This document shows, piece by piece, positions 1-42,754 of a stretch of DNA of 43,907 nt. The position numbers and the translations under genes are program-made. The first letter of the stretch is position 1; each line of letters opens with the position of its first letter. Source of the stretch: Calcarisporiella thermophila CBS 279.70. Taxonomy: Eukaryota; Fungi; Calcarisporiellomycota. The DNA lies in NCBI RefSeq assembly GCF_041956535.1, contig NW_027192212.1:508426-552332 (forward strand), given 5' to 3'. A model generated the notes under the pieces. It ran no database searches, had not been told where the DNA came from, and saw only the letters and a list, made by a program, of their open reading frames with translations.

Positions 1-555
1 TTTTGAGAGTTTTCAATGGCCAATGGCGTGTGAGTACTGAGATTCTCCGCAAAAGGCAAATAATCTACTTGATCGGCCTCTTGAATCTCTGATAAGAGAG
101 TGGGCCAGGCCACCTAATTTAGTAGTACTCAACTCAAGCTTGTTGGATATATCCTGAATACAGTTTGAAGTTATCACATAACACCATAAAAGACGATTTT
201 TAATGAGAGTTTGTGTTAAGCTCTTTCCGAAAAGCAGCGGGCTGAGCCGCCAATAGTTTGCCTGCGGCCAAAATGCGACCAAATGGAGCCACATACACAA
301 GAATAGATTCTAAATCATCCTCCCACCTAGGGCCCCGAATTTCCGCCCCCTCCTGCACCAGTAAAAATCCGTCTATGGGAAATTTGCTACGCCACTCTAT
401 TGACAGGATGATTAATTGTTGGAGTATATATATTTGGTGATTTTTCGCGTCGCATTCAGAAAACGTCAACTCATTTTCTATTCCTTTTTTTTAATATCGC
501 TATCTCTAACCTTTTTAAAGCATATCTCTTTTTCTTCAATCCTCCAAACAACAAG

Positions 556-741
556 ATGCCGAATATCTTTGCCACATGCCCTAAAGGACAGAAAGAAACT
601 AGATACGATTGTAATGGCTACACGGTCTCCGTTTCTAATCAGGTTCAAGTTGTCTTGGCTAAAGTTCGTATTGGTGTGCCAGAAGCGAGCTCCACGGGGG
701 CAAAAAATACCCCAGCAAAAGGACAAAGATCAAAGTCCTGA
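556..741 (+). CDS. 61-aa basic microprotein, 'MPNIF' family copy 1, function unknown
   Basis: Ungapped paralog of 2296-2481 (25/61 identical by manual count) with mostly synonymous codon differences in the conserved blocks. TATATATA at 425-432, pyrimidine-rich leader, CAACAAG-ATG start context, AATAAA at 952-957. Confidence 0.8.
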   Translation: MPNIFATCPKGQKETRYDCNGYTVSVSNQVQVVLAKVRIGVPEASSTGAKNTPAKGQRSKS

Positions 742-1386
742 GTCTTGAGTTCACTTCTTGGCTCTTTCCTCCCCTCACTCACTTAGCTAGCACCTCATTG
801 CATTTTTTTCTCTTCTTCTCTTCTCACCCTTCTCTGCATGGTTGATGGGGTGTTTTTCCTAAGCTTACATTACATTTTGTTCTGTATTTCATATACCTCT
901 TTTTTGCATTTCAGAGATACGATTGTAAAAACTCAACCTTTCTGTTTATCAAATAAAATTAATTCCAGACTTTCTACTCCAGGCTTTTCAAATCCCAGCT
1001 GTTGAGAGCAGTATAAATAACCTTCCAATTCACCTAGCAATTAAACAATGCCCCGTAGCGGCGGCAAGTATTTTCTCTCACATTTATACCTGAATCTATA
1101 ATCTGGAGGTGAAAATAGGCCCAGTAGGAGTCGTTGAATATCAATAATATAACATGCCAACGGGGTACGAAGGATGGTTTTAAACTAACAATTTATTAGA
1201 CGAAAATAAAACAGTTGCTAATTTATTGTGAAAAGCTGAAGCAATTAATTGAAAGTTAAAATACTGAATGAGAACAAATAGATTCAACGAGAAGAAAGCA
1301 AATACATGTACTATATCTGAAACTCAATATAGAAAGGACCAACAATAAATAGAAATAAGTCGAGGTGGGTTGAAACGAGGACACAG

Positions 1387-1545
1387 CTAGATATTCATAC
1401 GAATGAAAACGCAGAGAACCTGCTTAGACTCCTGGTTCCCGGGCGCTTTGTCCTTTCTCTTTGCCTTTTTCTTGGTGATGAGAGGTGTGACGTCGGCCGT
1501 CACCTTATTTGCTCCAGGTTTCTTAAAGGTGAATGGGTTTTTCAT
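1387..1545 (-). CDS. Putative 52-aa Lys-rich microprotein (MKNPFTFKKPG...)
   Basis: ATG at 1545 to TAG at 1387. CCAAT and CACGAAA upstream on the minus strand (about 1640-1660); T-rich 3' region with AATAAA (plus-strand tttatt 1222-1227). No recognised homolog. Confidence 0.35.
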   Translation of the reverse strand: MKNPFTFKKPGANKVTADVTPLITKKKAKRKDKAPGNQESKQVLCVFIRMNI

Positions 1546-2295
1546 AGTCGGATAGCAATTGACAGATGATAACCCCAAACCACCCTCTCCACCAAGTTGC
1601 CCCACTTACATACAACTCTAGGTCAAGTTCTCGACTATTTTTCGTGAGTTTACGATTGGTCCAGTGGGTAGTTCAATTTCGGAAATTGCCTCTTGTTGCC
1701 TCCAAGTGCCGATCCGAATTTGAAATCTCTACCAAACCAATAGCGGGCCTGGGGTGAACCATGAAAACCTTTGTAGAACAACAGACCAGGCGCTTGAGTT
1801 CTGGGAAATAAATTATGATTTATTTTTGAGATGTTTAAGGAGCTTGTTGGGTGCGTTTATATTAGTCACCCCACCTCATAAAATGCCAAATGGGTTTGGC
1901 AACCTTCGCCATACAAGTCAACTCTTCTATGACAGACTTTTTGCGTGAAAGTATTGCGGCCGTATGTCAGATGTTCAGCTGGCCAGTAGGAAGGAAGGTA
2001 GAAAAGAAAGGTTGGCGATTCGTGTCATTGTAAGCCCTATTTAATACTTACAAAGTCGCGAATTCGCTTGATTTGGTGAGCCAGCCAAGATTTTAGGAGC
2101 GCTGGGGGCTGGGCCTTGGTTACCCTCGCCTGGTCAGTATTTTGTTTATAAAAGGACACGAAGTAAACGTTTCATAATCCTCCTAATCCGTTTCCTTCCC
2201 GTTCCATTTTCTTCACTAGTTGCCATATTCATCCCTCCTAAGTTGTCTAACAGAGCCTTCCTTCCTGCCCTCAATTACCCATTCAAATCCAACCA

Positions 2296-2481
2296 ATGCC
2301 CAATATCTTTGTAACGTGGCCTAGCGGAAAAACTCGTGTCAAATATAACTGCAATGGCTATACTGTCTCTGTATCGACTGAGAAACAGGTAACCAGCTTG
2401 ATAGTCGGCGGAGATGAGTTGAACGCCAAAGTCAAGGGAACCAGTAATAATAAAAATGGACACCCAAAAATTAAAAGATAA
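2296..2481 (+). CDS. 61-aa basic microprotein, 'MPNIF' family copy 2, function unknown
   Basis: Paralog of 556-741 with identical length. TATAAAAG at 2147-2154, CT-rich leader, CAACCA-ATG context, AATAAA at 2645-2650. Confidence 0.8.
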   Translation: MPNIFVTWPSGKTRVKYNCNGYTVSVSTEKQVTSLIVGGDELNAKVKGTSNNKNGHPKIKR

Positions 2482-3662
2482 TATTCCCTGGCCGCTACCC
2501 ATTCTTTTCTCAATTTAAATTTTATTATCTGATGCTCGTATATCAATACCCCTTTCAATTACCGTACTTTACTATCTAACTAGTCACTCATACCATATAT
2601 AATCAAACTACAATATTTCTTGTCATCATCTATCTATCTATCTAAATAAATACTTTTATTTTTTGAGGAATGGCCGATCTCATTATTATTGATTTTTCTC
2701 TTTTGCATCAGCATAGCAGCTATACCGTATGTGTGGAAATTGACATGGCTTTAATATAATCCTTTGTCGTATGTTGAACCTTTATAGCCAATATAAGGCC
2801 TCAGATCAAGCGCTTGCTTCCAAACCATTTTACTTGATTCAAATCCCTTTCTATTCCAGAGGTCATAACGCATTAGGTATATTGTAATAACTAAATTAGT
2901 AATGCTTTTTTTTGGATTTATACTAGTTACCACCTGGAGGGCATAGGGATCTTCTATTCCCTATCTATTGCTGAATTTTAATTGTTTCTTTCTCTCCCCT
3001 CCTACATCAATTTTATTCTTAGTTTAAGCATATTTTGTTTGCAAACTAACTTTGTGTATTCGTTTTTCCAAAAGGGACATAAATAGCAAAGTGCACATGA
3101 GACCTCAATGATAAAATGAAGTCATTCTGAATTGATGTTTCTGATAACAGCTTTTCGACTTTTATGTGAAACGCTCAAATTGAAGAGGTTCTTGGAGTAG
3201 ACTATGTCCTCAAGAAGAACTTAAGAACTCTGGATCAAATTGGCAGTCACGACCAAGAAAACTTCCTGTTGTGTGAAAAATTTTAAACGTTTGCCTTCTA
3301 CTCTGGTAGCATCGAAACAGTGAATTGCCTAGAACAGATGCACAGGCATCTATGATTCTAGTCGCTCCATTGATGTCTTACTCTTAAACTTTTCAAGCAA
3401 GAGGTGATATGCGAAAAGTTTGAAGTTATTCATATAGTTGAAAATTATATTTGAATGGGCTGATAGGCAGGGAAATGCGGGTAAAGGAAATAAAGTGAAA
3501 ATGAAAACAATTATGCCATTAATAAAATCAAATATTGTCCAATGTCACTCAAAAAGTCCTACCTAAATGGAATACAAACAAGAGAGAAATAAAAATAAAG
3601 CGGTTGGGTTGAAAAAGAATAAACAACCGCGCTTGTGCACAACAGTGTAAAAGAAAAGATGA

Positions 3663-25308: not shown

Positions 25309-25766
<458 letters not shown>

Positions 25767-41392: not shown

Positions 41393-42754
41393 ATGCCTTA
41401 TGTTCCGTGGATCAACCTGAACAAGCGCATCGCATACGATGAGCAGATTCATGAATTCGCGGTCCTGGATGTGGAAGGCGCGCACCCTAAGAAACAGCAT
41501 GGCAAAAAGCATCATCACAAGGCTGAGCACAAGAAGCCACACCACAACGGGAACACGCATCACTCCAAAAAGCCCAGCCACCCCAACAGACACGTGTTTT
41601 CGATTGATGGCGAAGACCATCTCGGATTAGCGATTAAGCCCAAGAATTACGACAAGATAAAGCACGCGAAGAAGCATCCTAAGAAGCACAGCAAGGAGCA
41701 CAAGAAGCAGGCCAAAGGCGATGCACCTGCTGCGGCCAAACCCCCCAAGCAATCCCAGGTCGCGCCGTCTGCAGAGCCCGATTTTGTCGTTGAGAAGGAG
41801 GCGGACTCGAGCGGGCCGGCCCCCGCTGCCCAGGTCACCGAGCAGCAGCAGTCCGTGGTCGTGGCTCCTCCCCCCGCGCCCAGCAATGCCCAAGAGCTCA
41901 CCCCGCAACTCCCGGTGGCTAACCTGGGCTCCCCCCTCAACCCCGCCGTCCCCACCATCTCGTCCGCCCCATTCAGCGACCCCGCCACGCTCCCCACCGC
42001 TCAAGTGCAGTCCACGAGCAACACCGGAGCAATTGCCGGAGGCGTGTGCGCTGCCCTGGTTGTTGCCGGCGTGGCCGCCCTCTTCATCACCAAGAAGCTG
42101 CGCCGCACGTTCGGAGCCCGCGAAAACGAGGAGGACTTCACGCCAAAACAGCAGCCCCCTAAACCCTCGATGGCGAACGAGCGCCCCATGAACAAGAGCT
42201 TCGACATGCCCGCTCTGCGCGAGGTGCAGCCGTGGGACAATGCCTATGTGGACACCTCCATGATGGTGGCCCCGGCGGCCCCCGCCTCGGCTCTGGCCGA
42301 CTTGAGGAAGCAGGCCTACTCGGGCTACTTCGAGCCGGAAACGCGCGCCATCAGCATGTGGGGCAACGCGGCCCAGGAGAAGGAGGAAATCCCACCCCTG
42401 CCCGAGTTCCCGTTCGTGGAGAAGGAGCAGCAGCCCGAGGTGTACACCGTTGCCGTGCCTAAGCCGAGCATCAATGCCCCCGCGCCCCCTCCGCCTGCCC
42501 ACGCCACCACACCCACCCCCTCCGCCCTCCGAAGCCTGAACGGCGACCAGCTCACCCCTCAACTTCCCGAGGTGCGCGCCCCATCCTTTGTGTTCCCGAC
42601 GGAGGTGCTCTACAACACCTACTCCAGCGAAGAGATCGAACCCGAAAAACCCGCCTCCCCCACCCACGTCGAACCCGCACCCACTCCCGTCGTGATCATC
42701 ACGACCACAACAGCTGAGCAGAGTCGCTGGGAAACCGTCAGCCCGTCACATTAA
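41393..42754 (+). CDS. 453-aa single-pass membrane protein with His/Lys-rich N-terminus and Pro-rich regions, intronless
   Basis: Long ORF with strong G/C third-position bias; one TM helix AIAGGVCAALVVAGVAALFIT followed by KKLRR. Confidence 0.8.
   Translation: MPYVPWINLNKRIAYDEQIHEFAVLDVEGAHPKKQHGKKHHHKAEHKKPHHNGNTHHSKKPSHPNRHVFSIDGEDHLGLAIKPKNYDKIKHAKKHPKKHSKEHKKQAKGDAPAAAKPPKQSQVAPSAEPDFVVEKEADSSGPAPAAQVTEQQQSVVVAPPPAPSNAQELTPQLPVANLGSPLNPAVPTISSAPFSDPATLPTAQVQSTSNTGAIAGGVCAALVVAGVAALFITKKLRRTFGARENEEDFTPKQQPPKPSMANERPMNKSFDMPALREVQPWDNAYVDTSMMVAPAAPASALADLRKQAYSGYFEPETRAISMWGNAAQEKEEIPPLPEFPFVEKEQQPEVYTVAVPKPSINAPAPPPPAHATTPTPSALRSLNGDQLTPQLPEVRAPSFVFPTEVLYNTYSSEEIEPEKPASPTHVEPAPTPVVIITTTTAEQSRWETVSPSH

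Follow-up and report, generated by a model that had tools for sequence, protein, structure and literature searches.

Two short open reading frames near the start of a contig segment from Calcarisporiella thermophila raise the question of whether small, unannotated frames of this kind can be accepted as genes and, if so, what sort of protein they might encode. C. thermophila, a soil fungus, is a thermophilic member of the Mucoromycota (PMC11393059). The window, by which we mean the whole stretch of 43,907 nucleotides analyzed here (G000:C22:508426-552332), belongs to a genome of 28 Mb. No ORF of 120 aa or longer was found within its first 4 kb, and the first recognizable gene after the pair is a spliced universal stress protein (USP) gene on the minus strand. 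Besides the USP gene, the neighbor genes encode chitin synthase, Med7, siroheme synthase, Ras, a 242-aa alpha/beta hydrolase, and a GH92 protein. The 4 kb from the window start to the USP gene probably holds three genes from two undescribed families.

The window also contains a 453-aa intronless ORF (41393-42754) whose N-terminal part is rich in His and Lys and which also has one transmembrane-like segment and Pro-rich tails. It is an NCBI singleton with no Pfam match.

Two paralogous reading frames and the constraint on them

The preliminary description of this DNA reported two ORFs of 61 codons each, 1,740 nt apart, and both were found as described (Table 1). It further gave a gap-free alignment with 25/61 residues identical, 18/27 in the N-terminal part. 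These counts hold, but the alignment can be trusted only as far as about codon 32; across codons 33-61, the similarity falls within the shuffle range (p=0.14 ungapped, 0.76 local) and MAFFT inserts a 3-residue gap. The protein alignment of the pair scored 112, compared with a maximum of 50 in 5,000 shuffles.

Table 1. Positions of the features discussed, in window coordinates
Feature	Position	Strand	Remarks
Gene 1	556..741	+	61-aa intronless ORF, pI 9.8; base composition shifts at 742, the stop
Gene 1 constrained module, codons 1-32	556..651	+	MPxxF start, TxP, Y, predicted hairpin around an Asn-Gly turn
TATA box, gene 1	425..431	+	131 nt 5' of ATG; basis is a consensus match only
AATAAA downstream of gene 1	952..957	+	Same signal in 28% of comparable background windows, weak alone
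14-nt exact repeat of 601-614	915..928	+	3' flank of gene 1; a U-rich tract and CAG immediately precede it
52-aa lysine-rich ORF between the pair	1387..1545	-	Reciprocal best match to a 54-aa ORF
Gene 2	2296..2481	+	61-aa intronless ORF, pI 10.0; composition change-point 2494 (range 2460-2504)
Gene 2 constrained module, codons 1-32	2296..2391	+	
TATA box, gene 2	2147..2153	+	149 nt 5' of ATG
AATAAA downstream of gene 2	2645..2650	+	

Of codons 1-27, 23 agree at the first position, 21 at the second, and 10 at the third. Nei-Gojobori counts between gene 1 and gene 2 gave a pS of 0.80 versus a pN of 0.24 for codons 2-32 (Fisher p=1e-5), with a pN of 0.04 over codons 17-27; the block of nine codons singled out earlier (codons 19-27) does contain six synonymous and no replacement changes. 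For codons 33-61, pS was 0.61 and pN was 0.62. The purifying selection that had been proposed for the pair is thus clear for codons 2-32, but does not extend to codons 33-61. Of the six frames, the plus frame alone is open and at the same time best conserved. Stops interrupt the antisense frame sharing third codon positions in both copies; therefore, the constraint acts on the plus frame.

These are ORFs of fewer than 100 codons with protein-level constraint, as expected of protein-coding sORFs, and the TATA box, the clean leader, and the composition switch at the stop point to stand-alone genes. A search of 1.84 billion representatives turned up no annotated protein with the module. A Markov coding model trained on the genome, with impure training sets, placed the three family ORFs (the third is described below) between the coding and non-coding means (0, -8, and 0 bits), and the flanks scored below the ORFs. 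The earlier reading of the ORFs as real coding genes has strong support at the level of sequence, and we consider it very probable that they are translated.

The surroundings and general character of the two genes also agree with the initial account. Each copy has its own TATA box and AATAAA (Table 1), and the flanking DNA is not alignable (36/150 upstream and 50/150 downstream). No ATG occurs between the TATA box and the start in either gene. The proteins are basic, with a pI of ~10 and a positive net charge in both halves, and they are leaderless, in that no hydrophobic signal peptide can be read from their sequences. We found no RNA structure (z=+0.66) and no matching Rfam family. Inspection of the three forward frames of 2760-3600 revealed only short, stop-ridden fragments and no further family copy.

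A third member and a candidate second family

Profile searches of the genome returned the pair alone. When three mismatches were allowed, a degenerate pattern of the core codons hit three further genome sites, the same number as its control, and led to an ATG-initiated 81-aa intronless ORF on another contig (G000:C8:645530-645775; L044:1429-1674). This third member keeps the M-P-x-x-F-V start, T-x-P, Y, and NGYTVxV and comes into register after a 7-residue insertion, which stands before TxP. The alignment of all three members has 13 invariant columns. The anchored score of the third member, 102, compares with a maximum of 53 among 2,084 real ATG ORFs and of 73 among 10^6 shuffled ORFs, the genome as a whole offering ~2.3e5 candidate ORFs; with the selected motif held fixed, 0/20,000 shuffles reached its score. 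A Gumbel extrapolation had indicated ~3 chance ORFs as good as this one, which direct simulation contradicted, and we relied on the simulation. Like the pair, the third member is preceded by a TATA box, here at 83 nt, with no upstream ATG, and is followed by AATAAA. A TATA box together with the absence of an upstream ATG was seen in 3/576 background ORFs of 50 to 90 aa versus 3/3 family members. Together with saturated synonymous sites in the pair, the more distant third member bears out the proposal of an old duplicated family.

The alignment is also informative about chemistry. Where the pair shares a Cys, the third member has Gly, a difference that disfavors a disulfide or metal site, and no Cys, His, or acidic residue is common to all three members. 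No catalytic or metal site is therefore apparent in the three-member alignment.

Other sites with related motifs were considered as well. The gapped pattern MP...GYT[VIM] has 12 sites in the genome, where, judged by length, only the three family members are in frame, and none of eight other MPNIF-encoding sites continues into the module. An HMM match in L038 (E=0.005) lies off-frame within an FG-nucleoporin-like exon and was set aside as chance background. Three near-identical copies of a repeated element (L013, L015, and L017; G000:C25, C33, and C54) encode MPNIF in a 15-codon frame, and the L015 copy also has a transposase-like frame; this element is unrelated to the family. In its own surroundings, the third member lies ~1 kb upstream of a mitochondrial carrier gene, and the ATG of a 66-codon ORF without a Pfam match (L044:1674-1874) overlaps its stop codon.

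Between the two genes of the pair, on the opposite strand, lies a lysine-rich ORF of 52 aa (Table 1) whose counterpart is a TATA-driven 54-aa ORF 74 kb away (G000:C22:433967-434131, minus strand; L023:3967-4131). The two are reciprocal best matches among 1,712 ATG ORFs, with 11 of the first 20 residues identical and 7/10 conserved non-Met codons differing synonymously. Only 3/50,000 shuffles reached the score of this match, which was spotted by eye among three background matches. Shared motifs are an N-terminal M-x-N-x-F-x-F-K-K-x-x-A-N-K and a C-terminal R-x-x-I. These features suggest that the two ORFs probably constitute a second small microprotein family. Their likeness to the MPNIF module was not significant (p 0.03-0.16).

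The C-terminal tails

Similarity within the pair fades where both genes carry CAG/GT, and acceptor-like sites follow ~300 nt further 3'. It is conceivable, therefore, that the ORFs are first exons, the splice falling after codon 29 or 31 and adding a short exon from further 3', to give the main or an alternative product. The donor in gene 2 resembles the one called for a Ras-gene intron on the same contig, the acceptor-like sites are at 914 and 2711, and a 14-nt copy of the gene 1 core stands directly after 914. Against this, the signals of composition and codon phase persist to the stop codons. The sequence becomes T-rich (43-46% T) at the stops and not at the donors, with the best change-points at 742 and 2494 and not, in gene 2, at its internal CAG/GT (2388); the log-likelihood gain of a change-point is 17.4 and 16.3 at the stops versus 3.2 and 2.6 at the internal donors. 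Purines occupy codon position 1 in 49/62 tail codons versus 67/124 at the other positions (p=6e-4), and the chance of two random non-coding sequences each lacking a stop over 29 or more codons and then ending at the same codon is ~0.001. The supposed introns would measure 272 and 323 nt, compared with ~60-110 nt for plausible intron calls in a noisy list for which 45-160 nt was searched. The echo after gene 2 is at chance level in DNA (p=0.30) and lies 3' of AATAAA, and no comparable echo was found for the third member. With each part of the spliced models examined on its own, splicing at these donors seems quite unlikely. The composition switch at the stops, the codon-phase purines, and the open-frame odds together argue that the tails are translated exon, apparently under loose, compositional constraint.

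The 14-nt repeat 3' of gene 1 is itself unusual, with no exact 14-mer in 20,000 background segments and p ~0.01 under a gapped-alignment null against non-coding DNA. The simplest guess is a templated micro-duplication. From the copy, the original frame would continue for 13 codons. After the acceptor-like site downstream of gene 2, a 15-codon frame (2712-2759) bears a loose likeness to the conserved core (p=0.30 in DNA), and we rejected it as a real copy at that chance level.

Relatives, proposed role, and known systems

Searches outside this genome returned no true homologue of the family. Both the pair and the third member were put through a word-index protein search, HMMER was run over 1.84 billion representatives, and contigs of metagenomic, viral, and bacterial origin were covered as well; in the ESM Atlas, recognition was low (1475, 1513). 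Two HMMER matches, to a tandem-repeat ORF and an Ig-repeat protein, were rejected as repeat-summed artifacts. No true family match was found in Pfam, PHROGs, NCBIfam, or PDB sequences, and fold searches with Foldseek and VIA-align gave nothing meaningful (best E 3.9, best Z 2.2). Gene 1 matches gene 2 with only 38 bits and the third member matches the pair profile with 13 bits; relatives that distant would therefore be invisible in libraries of 10^9 sequences. These searches had low sensitivity and covered protein collections that lack the unannotated small genes of other fungi.

Standard annotation was expected to miss such genes, and this was indeed the case, as 0/3 are present in a collection of 15 billion proteins that does include neighbor genes from the contig. 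The gene finder SnowyOwl scores zero for single-exon models of <150 aa without a BLAST homologue (PMC4084796), and it is named for newly sequenced genomes in PMC11393059. We infer that it was used for the C. thermophila genome; the absence of the three proteins from the records fits this zero-score rule.

As to structure, the proteins had been described as beta-rich. Two AlphaFold runs with a two-row alignment placed strands at residues 14-19 and 22-27 around Asn20-Gly21 and left the tail unfolded, at low confidence (mean pLDDT 54 and 46). The description would thus apply to the N-terminal half, in the form of this low-confidence hairpin, but not to the C-terminal tail. We propose that a small family of at least three intronless, TATA-driven genes encodes intracellular basic microproteins of 61 to 81 aa. 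The module of ~32 residues may fold, alone or on a partner, into a short beta-sheet built on the Asn-Gly hairpin and would act as a small adaptor or inhibitor by binding a single conserved protein partner, a role suggested by the small size, the conservation pattern, and the lack of catalytic residues. The basic tail, drifting freely, could provide non-specific affinity for nucleic acid or membranes or allow nuclear entry. In fungi, canonical TATA boxes usually mark regulated genes, and the strong TATA boxes here could direct condition-specific expression during stress or development. Under the general aminopeptidase rules, Met1 would be removed, and the mature proteins would then begin with Pro. 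Taken as a whole, this scheme, in which TATA boxes drive genes for basic intracellular microproteins that bind a partner through the beta-hairpin module and carry a free basic tail, is, in our judgment, evenly balanced between right and wrong. It would be a speculative and rather unlikely extension to regard the module as a hitherto unknown, independent binding domain of 32 residues, widespread in Mucoromycota or other early-diverging fungi though unannotated there, that acts in a regulatory system induced by stress or sporulation, possibly alongside the second microprotein family.

The same charge and hairpin could also fit peptides that leave the cell without a signal peptide, either as cationic beta-hairpin defense peptides or as self-assembling, amyloid-like ones, since the pI is ~10 with net positive charge in both halves, hydrophobic residues alternate in the hairpin, and the gene family is small and diverging, with variable tails. 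A likeness to HET-s amyloid repeats, considered in this connection, finds no support in Pfam and was set aside. However, the conserved part is under purifying selection, there is neither a signal peptide nor a shared disulfide (the third member has no Cys), and no Pfam antimicrobial or amyloid-signaling family matched at E<=1, which makes this reading unlikely. That the genes were formerly functional and are now silent or decaying would agree with the unconstrained tails and a possible decayed fragment at 915; yet none of the three frames is broken between ATG and stop, and each gene has kept its TATA box, a clean leader, and AATAAA despite saturated synonymous divergence, so we think decay highly improbable.

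Descent from a larger domain, as a detached fragment or deep homologue of tautomerase, a ubiquitin-like beta-grasp protein, or the Ackermannviridae family phrog_6516, appears very unlikely too. The tautomerase family (4-oxalocrotonate, PF01361) is alike in its ~60 aa and in a Met-Pro start giving Pro-1, and all three members here begin with Met-Pro as well. It differs in that neither model here has a helix and the hairpin has no tautomerase counterpart. Tested with real family sequences, it was rejected at unfiltered HMM scores of -0.1, -1.7, and -1.7 bits and an hhalign probability of 0.3%; no beta-alpha-beta unit with profile similarity was seen, and PF01361 has no family match in the C. thermophila genome. 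A global alignment of gene 1 with tautomerase gave z=2.6, not significant after three post hoc tries. A ubiquitin-like beta-grasp was likewise rejected, at an hhalign probability of 0.2% against the window's own ubiquitin (25330-25557) with no Pfam match, and the combination of profile similarity, a central helix, and a C-terminal Gly-Gly was absent. The control in this test is ubiquitin fused, beyond those coordinates, to a ribosomal protein L40-type sequence. As for phrog_6516, gene 2 and the phage Vi01 protein Vi01_146c (L081:361-798) share 19/38 residues over the hairpin, where GKT...GFTVS parallels GKT...NGYTVS of gene 2. Yet this match has E=0.5 in its database, PHROGs gave no match to phrog_6516 at E<=1, and the five-member phrog_6516 profile scores 10 bits for gene 2 and ~2 bits for each of the other two members. 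The phage proteins are longer (105 to 154 aa), genes 1 and 3 resemble them weakly, and neither the invariant MPxxF nor TxP has a counterpart. Most likely this is a convergent beta-hairpin, which we keep as a weak lead. An N-terminal hairpin of biotin carboxyl carrier protein, taken as a shape from the ESM Atlas, also overlays model residues 1-31, with TM-scores of 0.35-0.38 on a low-confidence model; we see in it a generic hairpin and claim no homology.

Peptide precursors offer another comparison. MSDIN precursors of the amatoxin class have a 10-residue leader that starts with MSDIN and ends in Pro, and the core is freed by a second cut after Pro; borosins have a fused methyltransferase, and dikaritins have repeated Kex2-cut cores with a DUF3328 oxidase nearby (PMC9233826). 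The ORFs might be MSDIN-like precursors of cyclic peptides, with leader, variable core, and follower, in that they are short paralogous ORFs in which five variable residues lie between conserved codons 1-11 and 17-27, and they have a conserved Pro. But they are longer than MSDIN precursors and lack the MSDIN leader, no second Pro ends the variable stretch, and no full-length prolyl oligopeptidase, DUF3328 protein, or methyltransferase was present among the neighboring ORFs scanned. Moreover, the third member's insertion precedes TxP, with TxP and Tyr staying in register as in a folded domain. This origin is therefore barely credible. The microproteins have no repeats and no signal peptide, and borosin and dikaritin features were not found in them or among the neighboring ORFs scanned.

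Taken together, and judged by sequence, a microprotein family of at least three genes is real and undescribed, and it would belong to a kind already known, namely lineage-restricted fungal microproteins. The third member and the probable second small family at the same locus are new relative to the first reading. The genome evidently holds old, selected microprotein families that annotation has dropped and that can be seen from sequence alone, and the three-member alignment defines key residues with which searches of other fungal genomes and functional tests become possible. No model of fungal biology is changed as yet, as orphan microproteins are to be expected, especially in a phylogenetically isolated fungus. 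The closest parallel is with fungal sORF microproteins and orphan genes (PMC11413187), such as yeast Nrs1, which are likewise <100 aa, unannotated, and probably regulatory; the absence of a detected homologue outside the genome is a further point of likeness. The family described here is unrelated to them in sequence and differs in being a three-gene family with saturated synonymous divergence in the Mucoromycota.
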